NCBI GenBank assembly: GCA_039096225.1
Contig: JBBPEB010000034.1
Location: 1 to 64,000, forward strand
From: Blastocystis sp. Blastoise
Taxonomy: Eukaryota; Protista; Bigyra: Opalinata
DNA length: 64,000 nucleotides
Direction of reading: 5' to 3'
Positions within the stretch are counted from its first letter, which is position 1, and each line of letters opens with the position of its first letter. The translations under genes and the position numbers were made by a program. The notes under the pieces are model-generated. The model did no database searches. It had not been told where the DNA came from and was given only the letters and a program-made list of their open reading frames with translations. Below, piece after piece: positions 30,583 to 51,556 of the stretch.

Positions 30583-33500
30583 ATGAGGATATTTTATCTA
30601 CTCTTATTCATCTATACTACATGTTTAGCAGTGAATTCTGGAAAGAAATTAGGTTTGTTTTTTCAATTCTCTCTTTTCTTAAATTATTCCACATAATTGA
30701 ATAGGTAAATCAAGAGAATTGCCTGTACAAGATTGTATGATAAAACAAGGAGGTGATTATTATTTTGATTCTGAGTATGTTTGGATAGGAAAAGATCGTG
30801 ATGAAGTTTATCTTGTATGTATTGATATATAAATAGAATTCTAGAATCATTTATAAATTTATTTAGACTTATTGTTATCATTTTCAAGGTCAAATGTGGG
30901 AAATGTTTTATTCGAATACCAATAATGACTTTATAACAGATAAACGAAGTTATATAGAACATATATCGGATCCTACAGGCTTTAAGAACATAGAGAATAA
31001 TTCATTCAGAGATTACGACGTAATTGGTATGATTTTTATAATATATATTTGTTTCGATAAATATAAAATTTATGATTCTTATCATCATATTTATCTATAA
31101 AAAATAAATATAAATTAAAAATATATTTCTATAGGTTCCCTTCCTATTTCGTTATTGCCAGGAACCTCGTTAAAGTTGTTAATATTGAATATAAATGGTT
31201 GGTCTGATGATGAATATTTCATAATGACTTTTCAAAAGTATTCTACATTTAATGAATTCATAACAAATCAATGGCCTTATGAATCTTGTCAATCACTTCC
31301 TGGAGGTGAATATATAGAAATACAAACAAAATCAGTTACTTATAAGTATATATATATTATTGATTATTATTATTTATTTATATAGAGTATATGCATTATA
31401 TGTTGATGAGAAAGGATTTGGTATTCGTGATTGTATTATTCATTATACAGATAATTTTATTACAAAACAACCTTCAAATTATCCAAAGTATATTTTTTTA
31501 TTTATTTATTCATTTATAATATATATATATATATAGATATATATATTCAAATTTATATTCAAAAGAAGATAGAGTAGAAACAGTATGTGATAAAGTGAAT
31601 GATTATGCTGATAATAATATTCGAATTTTTGTTGCTACTTCTCGTATATATTTATATATATATATAATGAATATAATTCTATATAGCTATAATATATACA
31701 ATGAGTACCTATTATGATTATACTGCTGCAGGAGATGGATGTTGTTTCGTAGAGGATATTACTGATGATTTCCATAATAATGAAGTGATTTCTCGATTAT
31801 GCTGGTTAGATCCCCAAGGGAATACTGACTTTCAGAAATGGGGAAGTTCTAAAGAAACTGGATTCGTTGAATCAGAACTCAATGATTATGATCTTCCTGT
31901 GTATATATATATTATATATTTTTTTTATTCTTCTTTTTTATTCTTCTTTTTATAGTGCCTCTTTGAATTCTACATATTCTACCTTCAATACATGGTTTAC
32001 AGAAAGTAATAATTCTTATTCTTTTTCTTTTCCTCTTATTGGTATTATGGGTACCAAAAACCTTCTTACTCTTAACTAGTATATATATATTCTATATATA
32101 TTCTATACCTTCTAGTCCTACTTATTTTCCTTTAACAGATGTAAAAGGAGGATATGCATTAAGTCCAATAGAAGAATATATTGGTAAGAAATGTTGGTTT
32201 ACTATGAAAACAAATCTATTCTTCTTGTATATTGTTATTATTTTATATTTATATATTATTATATATTTAGATATGAGAATAGAACAGATCAATTTATAGA
32301 TTTTGAAACGAATAATGGATTATGGGTTTTTATTAATAAACATTTATTCTTAGATTATGGAGGGTATATATAATATATATTATATATTATTATTATTATA
32401 TATATAGTTATAATACTCCAGTTGGTTCTCATGTTAATATAACGAATTATGCAGATAAATTAGGTCTTATTCCTGGAATCACCTATTCTATATCTATATT
32501 CTTTGCTTCTAGAACATGTGGAACTCAATCAAGTATATATATAATAATAATAATAAAAATAATATTATTATTATTCTATAGATTCTATATCTCGTTTTAT
32601 AACTCAAACGAATTTGACATTTCTCTGTGATGCTCCTCTTCTCTCTAAAGTAGTTTTTATGATTATTGATAAAGAAGATACTACAACTATACCGAATATG
32701 AATAGTAGTATTAATCTCTCTGGAAATAGTTATAGTAGTACTTTAAACAGTGAAGGAGAAAATCCTTATTATTGTACAAGAGATTTCAAAAATATTCTTA
32801 TTCAACAACAAGTATATTTATATATTTATCATTATATATATATATTTAGACTGTATCTCTTAATAAAACATCAATATTTGGATATCATATTTATATGTAT
32901 GAAATTCTTCAATTTAAATCAAATATCTATTTAGGTATATATATACTAAATATATATTATATATATATAGAATCCATATCTCCATTTTGTATTCTTCTTC
33001 ATCCTTATATACAATACTCTTCTTCTACTCCTGTAATAAACCCTGATATTCCTTATAATAATATACTTCAATCTCGATGTTTCTCTCAAACTAATTCTTA
33101 TATATTCTTCTTTAATGAAAATAGTATATAAATATATAATAATATTAATAATAATAAATATATAGTTCTTCAAGTATATTTACCTGGTGATACTCCTCCT
33201 ACAATGAAATCTCCTTCTATAATCACTTCAGTATCCTATTCCTTCTATAATAATGGACAATTAACTCTACAGTTGATCTCTAGATATAATCAACTTCATC
33301 TCTATCTCTCTAATAAACATACTCTCAATATCAATCTTGTATTATTCTATATATTATTATTATTATTATTATATTTATAGGATTCTGTCTCTCATCTATC
33401 ATCAGGATATTATTTAGAAATTATTTCACCAGAAAATGTATATATTAATTATAATAATAATATAATTATATTGAATAGGGTATCCAATTGATATCTCCTA

Positions 33501-34392
33501 CAGTATCAACGATTCCTTTGACTTCTACTACTATTACTCCTTCTGAATATCCTCTCTTCTTCACGAGTACTGCAGGATCTATATATTCACTTCAATTATT
33601 CCTTAATAGTCGATGTGGACAAATACCTATAGATATCGATCTCGAACAACGAATTAAAGTCACTTTTATTAGTGATCGAAAGGGTATATTTATTATTTAT
33701 ATTTATTTATTATTCTATATATATATATAGTTCCATCTCTTCCTACATATACCTTCTCCTATCTTTCTTCTTCTTCTCTTTATTTATATTTAAAAGCTAT
33801 CTATGTAGCTATATATGATATTTATATAACAGTAGATGGTATTCCTATTCATTATTCTCCATTTTTATCTGCATGGACAGTAACTCATGGTTCTCTTCTT
33901 CCTTCAAATACTATTTTTATACCACCAAATAAAACTACTACTGTTGGTATTATTCGTATATATTTATTTTATTTATATAATAATAATAATAATATATATA
34001 TAGATGATTTTGAAATATATTTTCGTGATGAATATAATAATACAGTTCCTACAACATTATTTACAGGAACAATTCTATTAAATACAGATCAATCTTATTT
34101 CTTTACTTCAAAAGAAGGTATTTTATATATTTATTATTTATTATTATATATATAGATCCATTACATGAAAAATTAATATATCAATTTGTTTCTTATACTT
34201 CAGAATCTGTTTATTTTAGATGGATGTAAATATATATAATAATAATAATAATACTATTTTTTTATAGTGTGAATGGTTTATCTGTGATTAATACTCCATT
34301 CCAATTATCAGTATATAGTGATGTTCCTTCTTATCTCTACTCTTCTATCTCTACTATCTATTCAATTATTCCTTTATATAGAAGTGTTGATG

Positions 34393-34427
<35 letters not shown>

Positions 34428-37400
34428 TATATAGTTTACATTAATAGTAAGAGATCGTTATTATAATTTAGTGAATCAGAATAATTTTATAATAAAATTA
34501 TATGTAACATCTTCAGAAGGATTTGATATTCCTTTATTTCCAGGGGAATCCGATCAATTCTTTAGTTATAGAATCACTATGGATTCTACTTCACAATATA
34601 CATTATCCATTCGTTTCTTTCGTGAGATTTCTGAAGGTCATTTATATGTACGTCTTCTCAATAAAGAAGAAGAAGATATTGATACAATTAATTCTTATAT
34701 ATATTGTACTATTCAAAGTAGAATTAGTCCTAATGATTGCTCGAAAACTGAAATCTATATATCCTTTTATTTTATTTTATATTATATTCTCTCAATAATA
34801 TTATATATATTTCTTAATTCTACTTTTTTCAAGGTTTTCTATTGATTTTTAGTATTTACAACAAAACTAAGACAACTGAAAATTTTTAAGTTTTCAAAAA
34901 CAGAAGCCTGAAAATTTAAAATTTTCAAGGCTTTGAAAATTCTTGAGAAAAAGAACTGCTTTTTTTGACGTCGACCTGGGAGCTTATTTGAATAGTAATA
35001 GTACTATTTTCAAAATGGCAATCATTAAAGACGTATTTTAATTCATCATTTATACTATTAGCTTCTTTTTTCTTTATAGTATAGGCATCAGCAGATACAT
35101 TCTTCTTCGGCGAGCACACAAAGGTCTTCTTGGAGATTTCTAACCTACGTGACAACGAATTATGAACATACTGGTTAGCTACAGAGGCTGACTTCCATCT
35201 TCCCTGTACCATTAGTTCTTCTGTCGTGGCTCCATTCTCAGCAGCTAGGCTGGCCATTGTTCTACGAAAGCAGTGACCAGTGAAGCTATCAGCATTAGGT
35301 AGGTTAAGGTAAGTAGCTATTCTTCTTGGCCAATTACCAATTGTCTTCTCTCCAGTAGATTTGCAGCAGAAGTGGTTCTCAATTATCAACGGAAACAAGG
35401 GTCCTTCTTCATTAGTATCCAGCTTGCTATAGTATTCTTTTAGTATATTTCCCATCTTTACATTCCCTTCTTCTATAGGTACTATTCCATCAAATCCAAC
35501 TCCATTCTGGTCAGTCTTACTTCTTTCAACGTTAATAGCAACATGGTCATCAAAAATCTATATAAAAGGTATATATATATAATATAATCATACTGTTATG
35601 TTCTTCTTTTTTAACCTATATATTTCTATATGTCTCAAACCACTGTAAATGGTAATGATTAGGCACACCTTGAGTTGAAGGAGAGATAGGTCTTCATCAT
35701 AAGGAGCATTCAGGAATTGGCGGCAGTTATCATCTGATAGGACAGCACTCTTCTTTGGTGGTGGAAGGTTCTTAGCATGGTTCCTAAGTGATCCTTTTAT
35801 TCTTTCAGCAGTTACCTTGTTAACGTAGTGGTTTTCCTTGAATGTAATCATCTTATATAGGCCAGTAAGCTTGGACGTAATGGTATTGGCCCTCATTGGT
35901 AGATCTATAAGATACTGTATATATGATTCTAATACCTTATCTATATCTAATTCATGTTTAGGATCATGTAATGATCGGTAATTCTGGAACTCATTGTACC
36001 ATATCTCATATCGATGACCACTTTTAAGTGGTATAACACTAACTAAAGGTTTCATTTCAGCCATTTGATGATTATGATGGAAAAATAAAAAATGGCGGTC
36101 TTTTAAAGTATATTATTATTTATGTTTAGTTATTTAATTTGTTTTGTTTTATTATTATATTTATACACAACAGTACAGTTATTAAAGACAGTTACTAATA
36201 ATATCATTAAAAAAATGTGTAGTTATTTAATGAAATATTATGATAAATATAGAAATACTAATATATATTATATATATATTACAAATATATATATATATTC
36301 AATATAAATTAGAACAAATCGTTATTATATCAAAAATGGTCAAACTCAAGTATTGAATAGATGAATACTCATAAAATGTTTCTAACATTCACCTGATATG
36401 ACTAGTAAATTGTATTAGTATTTATAGTTTATAACAAAAAGTGTAGAGACAGTCTAGAATGAGTTATTTTTCCAGAGTATGGTTAAAAATGAATTTTAAT
36501 AAAAGATTTAAAACAAATGTTTCAATAATTAATGCAAAATTTATATCATTTATTAATATAATTAATAATTTCAATTATTACATATAATTAGGATATGTTT
36601 ATAGTTGTATATATATAATATATAAAAATGAATAAAACAATATAAAACCAATTGAAAAAACATCTTTCAGAAGTTCTTAAAGAATGTGTAATATTTCAGT
36701 GTCTTAATTTTGATTGATTTCCCTACGGGAAATACAACCAAAATATAAAACACTGAAAATTACACAATTTTCAAGAAACTACCTGAAATATACTATTACA
36801 GTCCTATTAGTTTTGCAGGTACATTAACGTATATGTATATATATACAAGAGATATATATGATGATGGATATTGTTTAGATAATCGAAGAGATAAATATAA
36901 AGTGTATATTAAAGGTGATGGAGAAGTATATATATATTTATTTAATAAATTATTATTATATATAGTATACTCAGAAATCCTTTTATTCATTTTCAACATC
37001 TCCTTCTCTTGATATATATACACAAGAATATCAATATACTTCTATTTGTCCTCTTTATACATTTATTCAATTACCTTCAAAAGTTAGAAATATAACTGTG
37101 AAAATAGATTGTTTATCTGAAGATAATATTTGGTCCTCTTTAGAATGGAATATCACTACTATACCTTCTACTGAAATGTATATTATTTTTATTATTATTC
37201 TCTTATATATATATAGTACATCTACAATTCAAGTAACTCATGATTCTCTTTATACTGCTGGTGATACTATTCCTATAAACATCAAATTCTTTGATATGTA
37301 ATTCTTTTATTATTCATATATATATTATTTATAGATATAATAATTCAGTAATTAATTTACAAAGTGTATATAAAATATGTGATTATAGTTATGTAGAAGG

Positions 37401-39195
37401 TATATTTAAATATATATATAATTTGAATTTAATTTTATATAGATCGAAATACTTATTATGATGTTATGAATCCAGATTCAATAAGTCTTCTTAGTACATG
37501 TTCTATACCTGCTAAAGTATCAGGATTCCATAAGATTTCATTGATTACATTAGTTTCTGGAAATATCTATGATTCTTATCTAAGTAAATATATTTTTATT
37601 TATATAATATATCTATTATCTATAATAGCTGTTGTTCCTGGTACTCTTTATATTGCTCATACTGATATTCATGGGACTGGAATTGAATTTGTTTCTTATT
37701 GTGATTCTACTAATATTTCTATTTGTGGAGATATCTATATGAATTTAAAAGTATTTATTTATTATATATTTTATATATTTATAATAGGATGAATATTTTA
37801 ATTCATTGAATGCTACATATTATATTGAAGAAGGTGGATATTCAAAAGAAGATCCTTCTTTTTCTATATATAATCATGAAGGAGAATATATTGATATAGA
37901 TATTCGACGAGCTGATACTTTAGAAGATACTCCTTTTACTGTAGATAAACATATACTCAATAATACGTATATTTAATATTATTATTATTTATTATTTATT
38001 TATAGTATTCATATTCATTATATTGTTGAAATGTCTTCTATTATTGGTCTTACTGAATCAGAATATCCTTATTTATATATACGTCTATTCTTTCAAAATA
38101 AACAAGATAATCTATTCTCTAAAGATATTCCTATTACTCTATCTTCTCTTCCTTATTCTCTATTCATGTATATTATATAATTTATTTTTTTAATTATTTT
38201 ATATATATTTATAGATTAACATCTCCTCTTAAATTTCATGTATCATCGATATTAAATGTCAATTTAGAAACTGATCCATTCTTTTTATTTCAAATATTTG
38301 ATGAAAATCAACATATTATTACGGGTCAACAATCTAATCTTAAATGGATAAATATAGATGAAGATTATTATGATGGAATCATGTATATAGTTGAAACTAC
38401 ATCACCTGGTACTTATAAATATCCTTTTATATATATATATATTAATAATAATAATTAAATAATATTATTTTCTTTAATCTATATACAACTATACCTCATC
38501 TTCCTACTGCTCGTAATTATACGTTTATATTATTATATAATAATATGCCTATATTGGATACATCAGTGACAATTACTACATTCACATGTTTAAAGTATTC
38601 TTTATCATCAACCTATTCAGGAACATTCAGTATGGGATTTGTACCTGAAATAAGAAGAGAATTAGATGTTATTGTTAAAGATATTCATAATAATGAAATG
38701 TATATTTATTTTTTTTTATTAATATTATTATTATATAGTCCTATTCCTCTAAATCAACAATTCAATTTAACTTCTTCTCCTCCTCTTCTCTATTCTTATA
38801 CTCTCAATAATAATCATATCCATGTATATATATAATAATAATATATAATTAATATATTATATATATAGTTTCTAATAGATTCTCCTCTTCATCTTTCTTC
38901 TTTTCGAGATCTATATACAATTACTATTTCTACATCCTTTGAAGATCAACCCTATATAGAAATACTTACTACCACTACTTATGCTTATCCTAATATGAGT
39001 ATATATATAATATATAATATATAATATATAATAATATAATTATATAGATCTTCTTGGATCTCCTTCTTATTTACTTTGTCCTGATGAATTAACTACAGGA
39101 ATAGAATTTAATTGTACATTTCATCCACGAGATATTTATGGTAATGATATTAATCCTACTTATATTCAACCATTCTTAAAATCAACATGTATATA

Positions 39196-39229
<34 letters not shown>

Positions 39230-42200
39230 AAGTGATTGATTCTAAGGGTAATAATCTTAATGTATGTGATTTACCTTATTGCACAGGGAATAAACCAGCT
39301 ATCTTTGTTTTTGATCATAATACTATTTATACAAAGTATATATTATATATATTATTATTATATTATATAGAATGTATTATATTGATGCTGATACATATAC
39401 GATAACATTTTCTCTTGAGCAAGTTCATTATGAACAACAATTTCAATTGATTATTTCTCCATCAATTATGGACCCTCAACAATCATTTATTCATTTCCCT
39501 TCTAATAATAATCCTATTCCTGTTCCTAATTATGAAGATTATGGAAAAAATGGTATTTATTATATATATTATTTTATTATATATATAGAATTATTAGATG
39601 ATGAAGGAATCAATAAAAGTATATATATATATTTATTATAGTTATTATTTATATATATAGCTTATATAGCTGGTAATCAAATTTTCATTCATGTTCATCT
39701 CTTTGATATATCTTTTATATTATATATATTATATTATATTATTATATAAATAAATATTTTCTTAATAATCACTCCTTTAATAATACAATAGAAGAAGATA
39801 TATCAAAAGAATTATATATAGAAATATATAAGAATGAAACTCGTATAGAAACTGATAGGTATATATATTTATTATTATTATAATTATTATATAGTTATGC
39901 AATATTAATTTATGGAAATGTATATGTATTTTCGTTATATTTATATACAATTGGAAACTATGATATATATGTAAAACGATCAGGAGTAGCTTTATTGGTA
40001 TATTGATTATATTATTATATTCTATATATATATGAATAGAATTCTCCAATACAAGCTATTATAATACCATCAGAAGCTACTTCCTATATATATTCCTGTT
40101 CTCCCTTAGAGAATGAAGATAAGTTACCTGATGAATTATGTAGTATACATGGATTAAGAGAAAATGTATATATTTATATATTACATTATATATTATATTA
40201 TATATTAATAGACAAAAGGATCATTCTTATTATCTACTGTAGATATATATGGGAATCCTGTATATACCTATTTTGACACAAATCTATTCTCTATGGCTAT
40301 TACATCTTCTGTATATATATATAATATATATTATTATTATTATTATTATTCTATATAGTCGAATACAATGTTTATTCCACCTCATTTGACTGTTCAATTA
40401 TATGATAAAGAACTTGGTATATATATAATAATATAATATAAAATAATATTTATATATAGGTCAATATTTGATAATCTATAATGATTTAACTTCTACTCAT
40501 CCTGGAAATTATATCCTATTTATATATATATATAAATATATTTAAAAAAATAAAAATTATTTTCTTTAATGAGTATACTAACTGAATATACACTTCAATT
40601 ATATTATAATTCAACTTCTCCTTTTCCATTATTAAAGATTCAACTCTATCCAGCACAAATCAGATATCAATCTACAAGTATTCTTATTATTAAAATAAAT
40701 AAATAATATATAGTCCTTAAGAATGATGATTGTGAACGTGTGAATACAACTTGTTATATATATGTATATCTTTATGATATATATGAACGTCCAATAGAAT
40801 TTGATGCCTATTCTATTTCTATTGAAATGGATGTATCACTGGATATAGAGGGTGATGGAAATCCTATTCTTCATACTGAACTATTCCCTTGTATATTTAT
40901 AAAGGATTTCTATACTTGTGAATATAAATTAATCTATTCTGGTGATTATATATATTATCCTATTATTAATAATCATCCATATCTTCAATATCATTATCTA
41001 TATCCTTTATATTATATATAATATAATTATAAAAATATATAATATCTCTATATATTTCTTAATAAACTTACTTCTCTTTCTCCTTTAGAACCTGAATATA
41101 CAAATACATATATATCATTTATTTCAGAGAGTACTTCTCTATATACAGATGTGACTATGATTATTAAGATTCGTGATGCATTAGGGAATTTATTAGATAT
41201 TAATACATCTAATAAAACTCTATTTGCTATTATTACTCTTGATTCAAGTGGAAAACAAAGATCTGTATGATTTCATATATATTTAATAATAATTATTTCA
41301 TAAAATTTCAATATAGCTTCGATTGACTATTCCTTTCAAATCTCAGACTCCTTATATACATAGTTTAACTATATTATCTCCTTTATATGGTTATGGATCT
41401 ATAGATTTTTATTTAACAGATATTACTTGGGATGATCTTACAAATACAGAAATCTATACAAAGATATTATTAGGTACTCAACCAAATCTTGTTTTCCTTC
41501 CTTCTTTATGTAAACAACATTCTTCTCTTAGTCCTTATATGTGTTATAATAATATGAATGGTAATTACATAAAGAATCCTATAGAATTCGTTGATAATGG
41601 ACAAACTATTCATTGTGTTTCTGATTGGAATGATTGTCATAATAGTCTTACTTGTCCTCTAGGAATGGAAGCTTGTATGAATCGTGAATCTGAAGATATT
41701 CTTATTGGTTGTCAACAAGATATTCATAATTGTACTTGTCATGGATATATATGTGAAAATGGAGCTTGTGTTGATAATTATATGAAGTATATAGATTGAT
41801 TTTATTTTTTTAACTAATATAATATAATATATATTTTTAGATGTCCTTCTTTTCCTATACATGATACAAATAAAGTAATATGTGTTGATGGAACAATAGC
41901 TATAAATAAGCAAATGTGTCCTCAACAAGTTCATTGTCCACCTTCTACAATTACTTGTGGAGATCTAGTTACTTGTGCAGTATCTATAGAAGAATGTAAT
42001 CAATATAAAAACTCTATTCAATGTCCTTCTTATGCTCCTATTTTATGTTGGGATAAAGTATTTTTTTATTATTATTTTATTATATTAATAAATAATATAT
42101 ATAAATAGAAAAGTTGTGTTATTGATCCAATTGAATGTCCTTCTCTTCGTTTTTGTCCTAAACCACTTATTTTATGTCCTGATGGAATGTGTACACATAA

Positions 42201-45200
42201 GTATATATATATATTATATTATAATAATATAATAATAATAATAATAATTATAGTATATCTGAATGTATATATACGACATGTCCATTAACCTATCCTTATC
42301 GATGTCCTCAAGGATATTGTGTTAAGAATGCTACTTTATGTCCTTCTTCAATTACATGTCCAATACATTATCATTTATCTCCTTCAAATCAATGTATTTC
42401 GGATTCTATATTTATTTTTGGTGAAACTTATAATTATCAATATGATAATAAATTCTTATATTTAAATTTATCTGAAAGTGCACCGAATACAAGATCAAAA
42501 AATATGAATTTATATTCATCTTCTTCTATTCTTAATAATAATATTCAAACTATTTCTTCTATTAAAACTATTAATAATAATAATAATGAAGAAACTACTT
42601 TATTTCCTTATCCTCTCTATCATAAAGATGCTTATAATAATATTATTTATGAAAAATCTTTAAATGAATCTACAATCATTAATATCTATACAAATTGTCC
42701 AAAAAACTTTTATAAATGTAATGATAATACTTGTGTTGTTTCTATGCTTGAATGTCCAACACATGTTTCATATCCTTTATATATTATTATATATTTATAT
42801 TTATTATATTTATTTATATATTTATATATTTTCTTTAATAACTTTACATGTCCTTCTCCTCTTGTATTATGTCCTGATAATACATGTAAACCTTCATCTT
42901 TTTATTGTTCTCAAACACCTCTTTGTCGATCTCCTTATATAAATTGTCCTAATGGAGGATGTGCTTTATTCTATCAACAATGTAGACCTAGTATCTTATG
43001 TACTTTTGAAAAACCTATTCTTTGTGATAATGGTACTTGTGTTGAAAATACTAAAGATTGTTATTCACAAATTCATTTTATTGAAAGAAATCAACAAGGA
43101 AGTATATATATATATTATATAATAAAAACTATAATAAAAACTATAATAAAATAAATCTTTAGAAACTACTACAAATATAACTATTCCTTCTTCTTCAATA
43201 TTATTAACTTCTCATTGTCCTTCTGCTTATCCATATTATTGTTCTTCTAGTAAAACATGTGTACGAAATAGTTTATTATGTTCAAGTCCTGTTATTTGTC
43301 CTACTACGAGTCCTATATTATGTGATACTGGTTATTGTGTATCTTCTTATTCATTATGTACTGATGAATCTAATTATCATTGTCCATTAGGATTCTATAT
43401 GTGTGATTATCAAAAAATATGTGTAGAACATTCTTATTTATGTCCTACTATATCTGTATGTAGAGATAATGAAATGAGATGTGAAGATGGAGGTTGTTAT
43501 ATGATTGAAGATAGTACTTATGGTGTTACCAATATATTCCCTTATATCTATAATTCTTTACAAGAATATAGTGAAGAATATTTAGATATAACAGAATATC
43601 ATGATAAATCTGATTTAAATATAAAAGATACAATAGAACAATGTGTTAGTAAATATTTAGAAATGTATATAGATGTATGTAATGTATATAATAATAAAGA
43701 AGATATAAATAATTGTATAAATAAAATAAAAGATCGATATCAACATTTATGTCCACGTAATTATCAATTTTATCCTTGTAGAAGATATAATATACATTAT
43801 AGTGATGATAGTTATTATATATATAGTATATCTCCCTATTTTATACCTACAGGAGATCCTATTGCTTCTATAGAAGGATCTTTAACTTCTATAAATAAAT
43901 ATTATTGGGATCCATTATCTACAGATACATCCTTTCAATCGAATATCTTATCGAATTCTATTCCTCCTCCTCTTTGTCCTAAAGGTAGTAAACGATGTAT
44001 AGAGGGTAGTTGTATATCTCAAAGTGAACAATGTCCTTCTTATCGTATATGTCCAAGAAATAAACCTATTTTATGTAGTGATGGATTATGTCATTATCAT
44101 CAGAATCAATGTCTTAATACTATTCATTGTCCTATTAATTATAAATTATGTAATGATGGTAGTTGTGTATTTATAACAAAGAAATGTCCATTATTATATT
44201 GTCCAACTACAAATCCTATATTATGTTGGGATCAATCATGTCATGTTTCTGAAGATGATTGTCCACCTATACCTCCTTATGTACCTTCGAATTGTCTTAA
44301 TGGAAAATGTATTACTACTGGAGCAAGACAAGTTACTAAATTTACTAGTTTCTGTAGTATTCATGGAGAATATGTTAAAGATCGAAGTGATTGTATTAAT
44401 GGATATGAAGGCTATTATAGTAGGTGTTTATTGTTTTTTTATTTTTTTTTTATTTTTTTTTATTTTATTATTTTATTATTTTATTATTTTATTATTTTAT
44501 TTTTTATTTTATTTATTTTATAATATCTTTTTATAATATATAATATCTTTTTTTATAGATAAATATTCAATGGAAAGTGATCATTATGTGACTGGTTTTT
44601 GTAGTTATGATAAATATTTATGTTCTGATGGTACATGTGTTCGTGATTCTTCTTTATGTTCTGAACCTTTATGTCCTATGTTTAAACCTTATAAATGTAT
44701 TTCAGGATTATGTGTATCTTCAAAAGAAGAATGTACATCGAATGATAATTGTAATAATGATCAATTTAGTGGATGGTGTCATAATACATTAATATGTTAT
44801 TCAAAAGATAGTTCAAAGAATAATATAGATATTTATCATTCTTCTTGTGATTGGACTTGTAATACTAATGGATATATACGTTGTTTAGATGGTACATGTC
44901 GTCAATCTATAGAAGATTGTCCTCTTTCGAATGGTTGCTCTTCTTCTAAACCTAAATCATGTTATAATGGTGAATGTATAAAAGAAGATGAAGAATGTAG
45001 TCGTATGTTTGTTTTGTTTTTTTTTTATTTTTTTTTTTATTTTATTTTATTTAATAATAATAATATTTATAATAATAAATAACTATTATCTAGCTTTATG
45101 TGTTGCTCCATATAAACAATGTGAGAATGGTTTATGTATGATATCTACTTTTTATTGTCCTTATTCTTCTTATTCATTTATTCCTGAAGATACATCTCCT

Positions 45201-51225: not shown

Positions 51226-51345
51226 AGTAAGCATTATTGTTTTTTTTATAAATTTTATCTATATAATTTTTTTTTAATTTTTAGTTGTTTTAATATTGTT
51301 TGCTTTTATTTATATTATACACTATGGACATTTTTTCAGGTTTCT

Positions 51346-51556
51346 GTCAAAAGGTCCAACGACTTTTTTGTTTTGGTTTCCCCAGTGGTGAGCAGTGAAA
51401 ATTTTTAAATATGTAGCTGACAAAAGGTTATTTGATTTTTCTGTTTGGTTTCCCCAGTGGTGGAGCAGTGAAAAAATTTTAAAGGGTAGCTGACAAAAGG
51501 TCCAACGACTTTTTTGCTTTGGTTTCCCCAGTGGTGAGCAGTGAAATTTTTTGTCA
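51346..51556. repeat. Three 73-bp subterminal tandem repeats
   Basis: CAAAAGG...TTTGGTTTCCCCAGTGGTG(G)AGCAGTGAAA units start at 51348, 51421 and 51494. Confidence 0.92.

Follow-up and report, generated by a model that had tools for sequence, protein, structure and literature searches.

The genome assembly of Blastocystis sp. Blastoise, an isolate from the tortoise gut, comprises 33.3 Mb in 34 contigs at about 20% GC. The window analyzed here is the first 64 kb of contig C26, with a telomere at its beginning, and it holds a giant surface-protein gene. In a local splice model, the encoded protein runs from a signal-like N terminus through a weak fibro-slime match, a repeat region, and a Cys-rich region (about residues 2100 to 3900) to a single transmembrane (TM) helix (about residues 4173 to 4199) and a long tail; the Cys-rich region and TM helix given in a preliminary description of this DNA were thus right. 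The same description had read an Ig/filamin-like repeat in the protein, a label left without support by Pfam searches of single host exons, which returned nothing useful. Instead, two adjacent host exons match consecutive parts of the NCBIfam fibro-slime model TIGR02148, weakly and below its cut-off. Directly 3' of the host stop codon lie 73-nt repeats (51344 to 51552). Within one intron of this gene sits a Crypton-like element with a single YR recombinase gene, and the features of the locus are as follows.

30583 to 51225, plus strand: giant surface-protein host gene, about 63 exons and about 5,135 amino acids in a stop-free local splice model
34759 to 34767, plus strand: U12 5' splice site ATATCCTTT, retained in paralogs (ATATCTTTT in one)
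34810 to 34818, plus strand: native U12 branch-point motif TTTCTTAAT, separated from the acceptor by 1,981 nt since the insertion
34822 to 34823, plus strand: proximal AC, host intron DNA 5 nt after TAAT, not a natural acceptor
34827 to 36797, minus strand: Crypton-like element, 1,971 bp with both TT copies, its ends taken from eight copies and three empty/filled pairs
34864 to 34925, plus strand: left subterminal repeats with CTGAAA cores at 34876 and 34908, largely conserved across subfamilies
34925 to 35557, minus strand: YR exon 2 (K171, H252, R255, W278, Y287), antisense to the host gene
35558 to 35593, minus strand: YR intron, 36 nt, GT-AG, donor intact here and GA in the sister copy on C15
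35594 to 36064, minus strand: YR exon 1 (N-terminal domain, R144), antisense to the host gene
36605 to 36797, no strand: right end of the element, an imperfect palindrome of about 170 nt and a conserved terminus, with CTGAAA at 36753 and 36783 and inverted at 36665 and 36694
36798 to 36799, plus strand: true U12 acceptor AC, host derived and in single copy, after which the exon resumes with S-P-I-S-F at 36800

The host exon upstream of the intron ends in KTEIY at 34758 and is followed by the U12 donor and the branch motif, all present as first described. The natural form of the intron can be read from its paralogs. A search of the genome DNA for loci with both insertion flanks side by side found 14 others, all without the element, which is present in 1 of 15 loci. 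Thirteen of these empty paralogs have a plain AT-AC intron of 75 to 84 nt that ends in TTCTTAAT-TCTAC-TTTTT-AC and is followed by AGT CCT, and splicing at the last AC yields in-frame KTEIY|SPISF. With a ATATCCTT donor, a branch-point motif, and an in-frame AC acceptor, all 13 are predicted U12 introns. Use of the proximal AC, on the other hand, shifts the frame in every empty paralog, and in one of them (L012) the position is mutated to AT, which rules it out as the natural acceptor. Moreover, verified TAAT-to-AC spacings are 6 to 12 nt, while the proximal AC is only 5 nt away, and no alternative donor that would place it in frame fits ATATCCTT. Because the last AC is in frame and the first shifts the frame in all paralogs, the acceptor must be the AC at 36798 to 36799, and the intron before the insertion had 72 nt. 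The element sits between branch point and acceptor and has lengthened this intron to 2,041 nt.

These results change part of what had been proposed for the site. The 3' splice site, said to have been duplicated by the insertion, is in single copy. Precise excision would in principle restore the gene, as suggested, but with an intron of 72 nt rather than 65 nt. Likewise, splicing to the proximal AC would indeed add FFQG...ENF and reach a stop at 34887 to 34889, although that AC is no natural acceptor. Genome-wide, the TAAT-to-AC distance of candidate U12 introns is mostly about 8 nt; in the interrupted intron it is 12 nt.

Of the 62 host-gene introns, six are AT-AC, counting the interrupted one, and all lie within 8 kb (34759 to 42847). 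The other five measure 65 to 78 nt, in agreement with the similar size reported before, and the 61 uninterrupted introns of the gene range from 35 to 133 nt. Minor (U12) introns of Blastocystis are short, mostly AT-AC, and often in phase 0 (PMC10639083). The interrupted intron is likewise AT-AC and in phase 0, whereas the host gene stands apart from that description in having unusually many such introns (6 of 62), one of them stretched more than a kilobase beyond its natural length by the element.

Comparison with the empty paralogs also fixes the ends of the element. The net insertion is 1,969 bp, and no host bases were lost or duplicated beyond the TT. The left end reads TT-TCAAGG and the right end AATATACTA-TT, and AATATA(C/T)TATT is common to the right ends of all eight full-length copies in the genome. 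The preliminary description had placed the boundary at TACT, which does occur twice (34821 to 34824 and 36791 to 36794) but is not the terminal repeat: the first TACT belongs to the host intron and precedes the true acceptor by 7 nt, and the second is part of the conserved right end of the element. Empty paralogs read TCTAC-TTTTT-AC|AGT, not TCTAC-TATTAC-AGT, and together with the other element copies they rule this boundary out; across the window, each kilobase has about 5 instances of TACT. The heptamer CTGAAAT (34748 to 34754 and 36783 to 36789) was rejected as well, since none of the element copies ends there and its first occurrence is host exon sequence that the paralogs also have. Variable coupling sequences of the Tn916 kind were also ruled out, as the subfamilies do not differ in the 7 nt inside the right end.

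Three exact pairs of empty and filled sites share an identical geometry, in which the target is TT-N-C-R and the TT is the only sequence held in common. In the second pair, the filled site carries a 99%-identical sister of the window element on C15 and the empty form is on C28; in the third, a subfamily-2 copy on C15 is matched by an empty form on C23. The same rule predicted both exactly. Empty sites for two further element copies were searched for and not found. Subfamily 3 probably has a left end one base shorter, judged from the neighbouring repeat units. Across the eight copies, C stands at position +2 after TT in seven (p about 1e-6, for a pattern picked after the sites had been seen) and R at +3 in seven. 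TTT-N-C-R occurs about 4.8 times per kb, with some 160,000 instances in the genome. A U12 acceptor that ends in TTAC and is followed by A fits TT-N-C-R, and the motif alone therefore suffices for the position of the insertion. Targeting of TACT or of U12 acceptors, raised as an option at the outset, was ruled out when copies and flanks were compared genome-wide: the shared target is TT-N-C-R, and none of the other seven copies (0 of 7) has a U12 donor within 150 nt. A search with the 12-nt end pattern was unspecific.

The YR gene was searched exon by exon or via its deposited protein. Its product is a 367-aa protein in NCBI, where both it and its nearest relatives are deposited as Blastocystis sp. 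Blastoise proteins. As first reported, the gene is antisense to the host and has all catalytic residues; the R-(K)-H-R-(H/W)-Y set is intact and invariant in the family alignment, the protein matches PF00589, and the nearest solved structure is Cre. The nearest named matches outside Blastocystis are insect YR genes. In a tree that holds no named Crypton reference, the Blastocystis YR proteins form their own clade, with 25 to 30% identity to others.

Exon-by-exon protein searches found 11 YR loci, of which eight are full-length elements and three are more distant. The eight are 1.6 to 2.0 kb long, carry one YR gene each, lie at T-tract targets, and fall into three subfamilies with 45 to 99% protein identity to the window copy. 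Three near-identical pairs (99.0, 99.8, and 99.0% identity) lie at unrelated sites. Within the ends of all eight copies there is a single long ORF pair and no RT, DDE, capsid, or polymerase. The copies have no long direct repeats and no terminal inverted repeats, only the subterminal CTGAAA repeats and the right-end palindrome that are common to all eight; the left CTGAAA repeats are candidate recombinase-binding arms. Transposition through an RNA intermediate was ruled out, as the YR intron is kept in seven of eight copies. An origin from a Polinton-like virus was excluded too, with no relative in viral contigs and no viral genes in or beside the copies.

The window element and its sister on C15 (L042, C15:124769-126739) differ at 20 positions. 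The sister is located in end repeats adjoining a Tc1/IS630-type transposase. Its YR-intron donor has changed from GT to GA, and it is probably non-autonomous because its deposited protein skips the catalytic Arg region. The window copy, which has kept the GT donor that the sister lost, may be the active one.

Several further observations concern the more distant family members. The subfamily-3 copies L047 (C15:711609-713219) and L048 (C28:303209-304821) have TATGG in the left end and not in the right. Matches to the subfamily-2 right end at C5:4915 and C22:549706 have no nearby YR match and are possibly non-autonomous or solo ends. The distant YR genes L049 (C23:222205), L050 (C16:969073), and L051 (C28:342490) share 32 to 38% identity in exon 2; the exon-1 match contains stops in two of them, and their ends were not found.

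How does this family relate to known mobile elements? Crypton DNA transposons are an established superfamily (Goodwin et al. 2003; Kojima and Jurka 2011 [PMC3212892]), and the window element is of this already known kind; what is new is this Blastocystis family with its base-exact ends and target. The likeness lies in a lone YR gene with R-H-R-Y, the lack of RT or DDE, dispersed near-identical copies, and the absence of long terminal repeats and terminal inverted repeats. CryptonF and CryptonS have terminal direct repeats of 4 to 6 bp (TATGG in most CryptonS), CryptonA and CryptonI have none, and CryptonF has a GCR1_C domain (PMC3212892). In contrast to CryptonF and CryptonS, the window element shares only TT between its ends (an imperfect 5 bp, TTTCA/TTACA), and Pfam scans of family members found no GCR1_C domain. 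The element shows every feature tested for the superfamily, and its anatomy, as far as sequence can tell, is nearest to CryptonI and CryptonA. As regards CryptonI, the nearest named matches are insect YRs, yet the Blastocystis clade is separate, in a comparison that included no named CryptonI. The Crypton survey does not mention Blastocystis, and the Blastocystis genome preprint does not mention Cryptons.

The Starships of fungi (PMC10104507) offer a second comparison. They too are mobilized by a YR and use a short target motif that is matched by the element end, with no true target duplication; the motif is TTAC for Starship (PMC10104507) and TT-N-C-R here. Footprint-free excision has been shown for Starship (PMC10104507) and is predicted for the window element. 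However, Starships are giant and cargo carrying, with DUF3435 captains, whereas the window element is a cargo-free 2 kb with a YR of the Phage_integrase type.

Taken together, the evidence makes it likely that an active Crypton-like DNA transposon recently inserted at this locus and disrupted the gene. The initial recognition of a Crypton-like YR element is upheld, as is its place in a U12 intron of a surface-protein gene that is otherwise intact. We propose that a YR-only transposon family is currently moving in this genome. The recombinase would join both ends of an element into a 1,969-bp circle, as suggested by YR chemistry and the Crypton model, with a junction (...ATACTA-TT-TCAAGG...) that would form an imperfect inverted repeat. 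The circle would then re-insert at TT-N-C-R in a T-tract, with TT as the sole shared sequence. The window site would have been struck since its acceptor, TTTTTAC|A, happens to fit this motif, like about 160,000 others. This family is of use beyond the locus. Crypton ends are hard to define, and the excision circle was still only a proposal in 2023 (undemonstrated as of PMC10104507). In a cultured protist there is now a family with recent activity, eight full copies, three base-exact pairs, the TT-N-C-R rule, and an intact recombinase, and base-exact ends yield an exact predicted circle junction.

By parting the branch point from the acceptor, the insertion would leave the interrupted copy with no RNA other than truncated or unspliced forms. 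An AC at +5 and an AG at +15 now follow the native branch point, and splicing to either of them, or to any other AC or AG up to 45 nt away, would run into a stop within 21 codons, which is why we expect this outcome. In the filled allele, the TTAAT closest to the distal acceptor is 91 nt away, and only CCTGAAAT is nearer.

That motif bears on a different outcome, in which the insertion is tolerated in the manner of an introner and the element is spliced out within the 2,041-nt U12 intron. Splicing would run from the native donor to the native AC or to an AC in the element (36792-36793, adding YY), with CCTGAAAT as a weak branch point. Crypton-derived introners have been reported (PMC12130899). 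Against a knock-out stand an intact donor and native acceptor, two distal ACs that both keep the frame, an open downstream frame, and the CCTGAAAT that the element end places 10 nt upstream of the native AC, within the 6-to-12-nt range. Nevertheless, the native consensus branch point has kept its distance of 52 nt to the donor and would be expected to compete, CCTGAAAT deviates from the TCTTAAT/CTTTAAT of all six introns, and no other intron of the host gene exceeds 133 nt. Also, CCTGAAAT is present in the element end of every subfamily 1 and 3 copy, whatever the site, and is therefore no adaptation to this one. We regard this outcome, the chief alternative to a knock-out, as unlikely.

Redundancy of the host gene bears on why a disrupting insertion could persist. 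Five full-length paralogs (on C8, C13, C14, C30, and C31) are colinear with the interrupted gene at 94 to 96% identity and lack the element, with frames compared within 1.5 kb of the site. The interrupted gene is thus one of six near-identical full-length copies, and the insertion is tolerated because five uninterrupted ones exist; such redundancy removes the need for control. The nine further paralogous loci are partial. One of these, L008 (C26:1094199-1097152), carries an insert of about 2.9 kb that is unrelated to the Crypton-like element. This insert lies upstream of the branch point within the same U12 intron, and its end shows a GC-rich hairpin and CTTG (Helitron-like).

Since neither the host gene nor the element is unique in the genome, a YR element might have been wrongly joined into one paralog during assembly. 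Such an artefact has a next-to-negligible probability: the element differs from its sister at the 20 positions given above, its junctions obey the same base-exact rule as the two other pairs, and both flanks carry variants private to the window. The private exon variants are G at 34633 and A at 34635. Paralogs alone would yield empty-site and distal-junction reads, and therefore only these two variants identify the window allele.

The age of the insertion can be bounded from the downstream gene, which had been described as undegraded and has 4,073 host codons (12.2 kb of coding sequence) free of stops. At 0.5% neutral divergence (per lineage, from the sister split), 3.5 stops would be expected and the probability of none is 0.03; at 0.1%, 0.7 would be expected. 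Therefore, the insertion is younger than about 0.25% divergence, or stops were purged by gene conversion, or the copy is still expressed. In RNA contigs from two runs, 15 to 17% of sampled words of 34400 to 37200 are present, where host exons shared with paralogs would account for up to 19% and a full YR transcript for 38%. Such values are compatible with a host family that is expressed and a YR gene that is not transcribed in full, a weak indication in which the copy is not distinguishable.

The preliminary description had proposed a regulated DNA or splicing switch for the locus, in which programmed excision or acceptor choice would determine whether the full membrane protein or a truncated, secreted form is made. 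It had cited bacterial excision elements for comparison. The skin element of Bacillus sigK and the nifD and fdxN elements of Anabaena each occupy one fixed site in a single-copy differentiation gene and are excised on a developmental cue. The window element resembles them in that a recombinase element interrupts a gene that its excision would restore; moreover, the YR gene is intact, the host gene is otherwise open, and the 72-nt intron would be regained to the base if the element were excised conservatively by a YR at TT. However, the TACT boundary was wrong and the proximal AC is no natural acceptor. The other copies share TT, not TACT, and lie at unrelated targets without U12 context, findings that the preliminary description had itself named as contrary to its reading; unrelated sites are expected for a mobile family and not for a domesticated one. 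Instead of a fixed site in a single-copy gene, we find eight dispersed element copies and a host gene in six full copies, of which one is interrupted, with the element in only 1 of 15 loci. A switch would be pointless beside five uninterrupted copies unless paralogs are expressed one at a time, and with six near-identical full-length genes present, nothing depends on the interrupted one. Exact excision that restores an intron is a property of conservative YR elements and is therefore no evidence of a switch. Under the insertion reading that we favor, any excision would be an ordinary, rare transposition event. We consider a regulated switch highly improbable.

A broader version of this idea holds that the interrupted copy is functional under control, either through precise excision driven by a cue or through an element-end branch point that lets the minor spliceosome remove an autonomous YR transposon, so that paralog or form becomes switchable. 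It too is very unlikely. If true, it would be a eukaryotic counterpart of the bacterial excision switches.

Two side observations concern other movement in this genome. First, window positions 33476 to 39940 and matches on C13 (two), C17, C20, C23, and C26 are partial host-gene copies with a common left border and mostly a common right border, as if carried by a mobile element. Second, the element copies L044 (C14:81345-83291) and L045 (C22:949070-950975) differ at three positions besides one intron, and therefore very young moves do occur in the genome. L045 lacks exactly the 41-nt GT-AG intron present at this position in the other seven copies, as though a DNA transposon had lost an intron precisely and very recently, perhaps by cDNA conversion.
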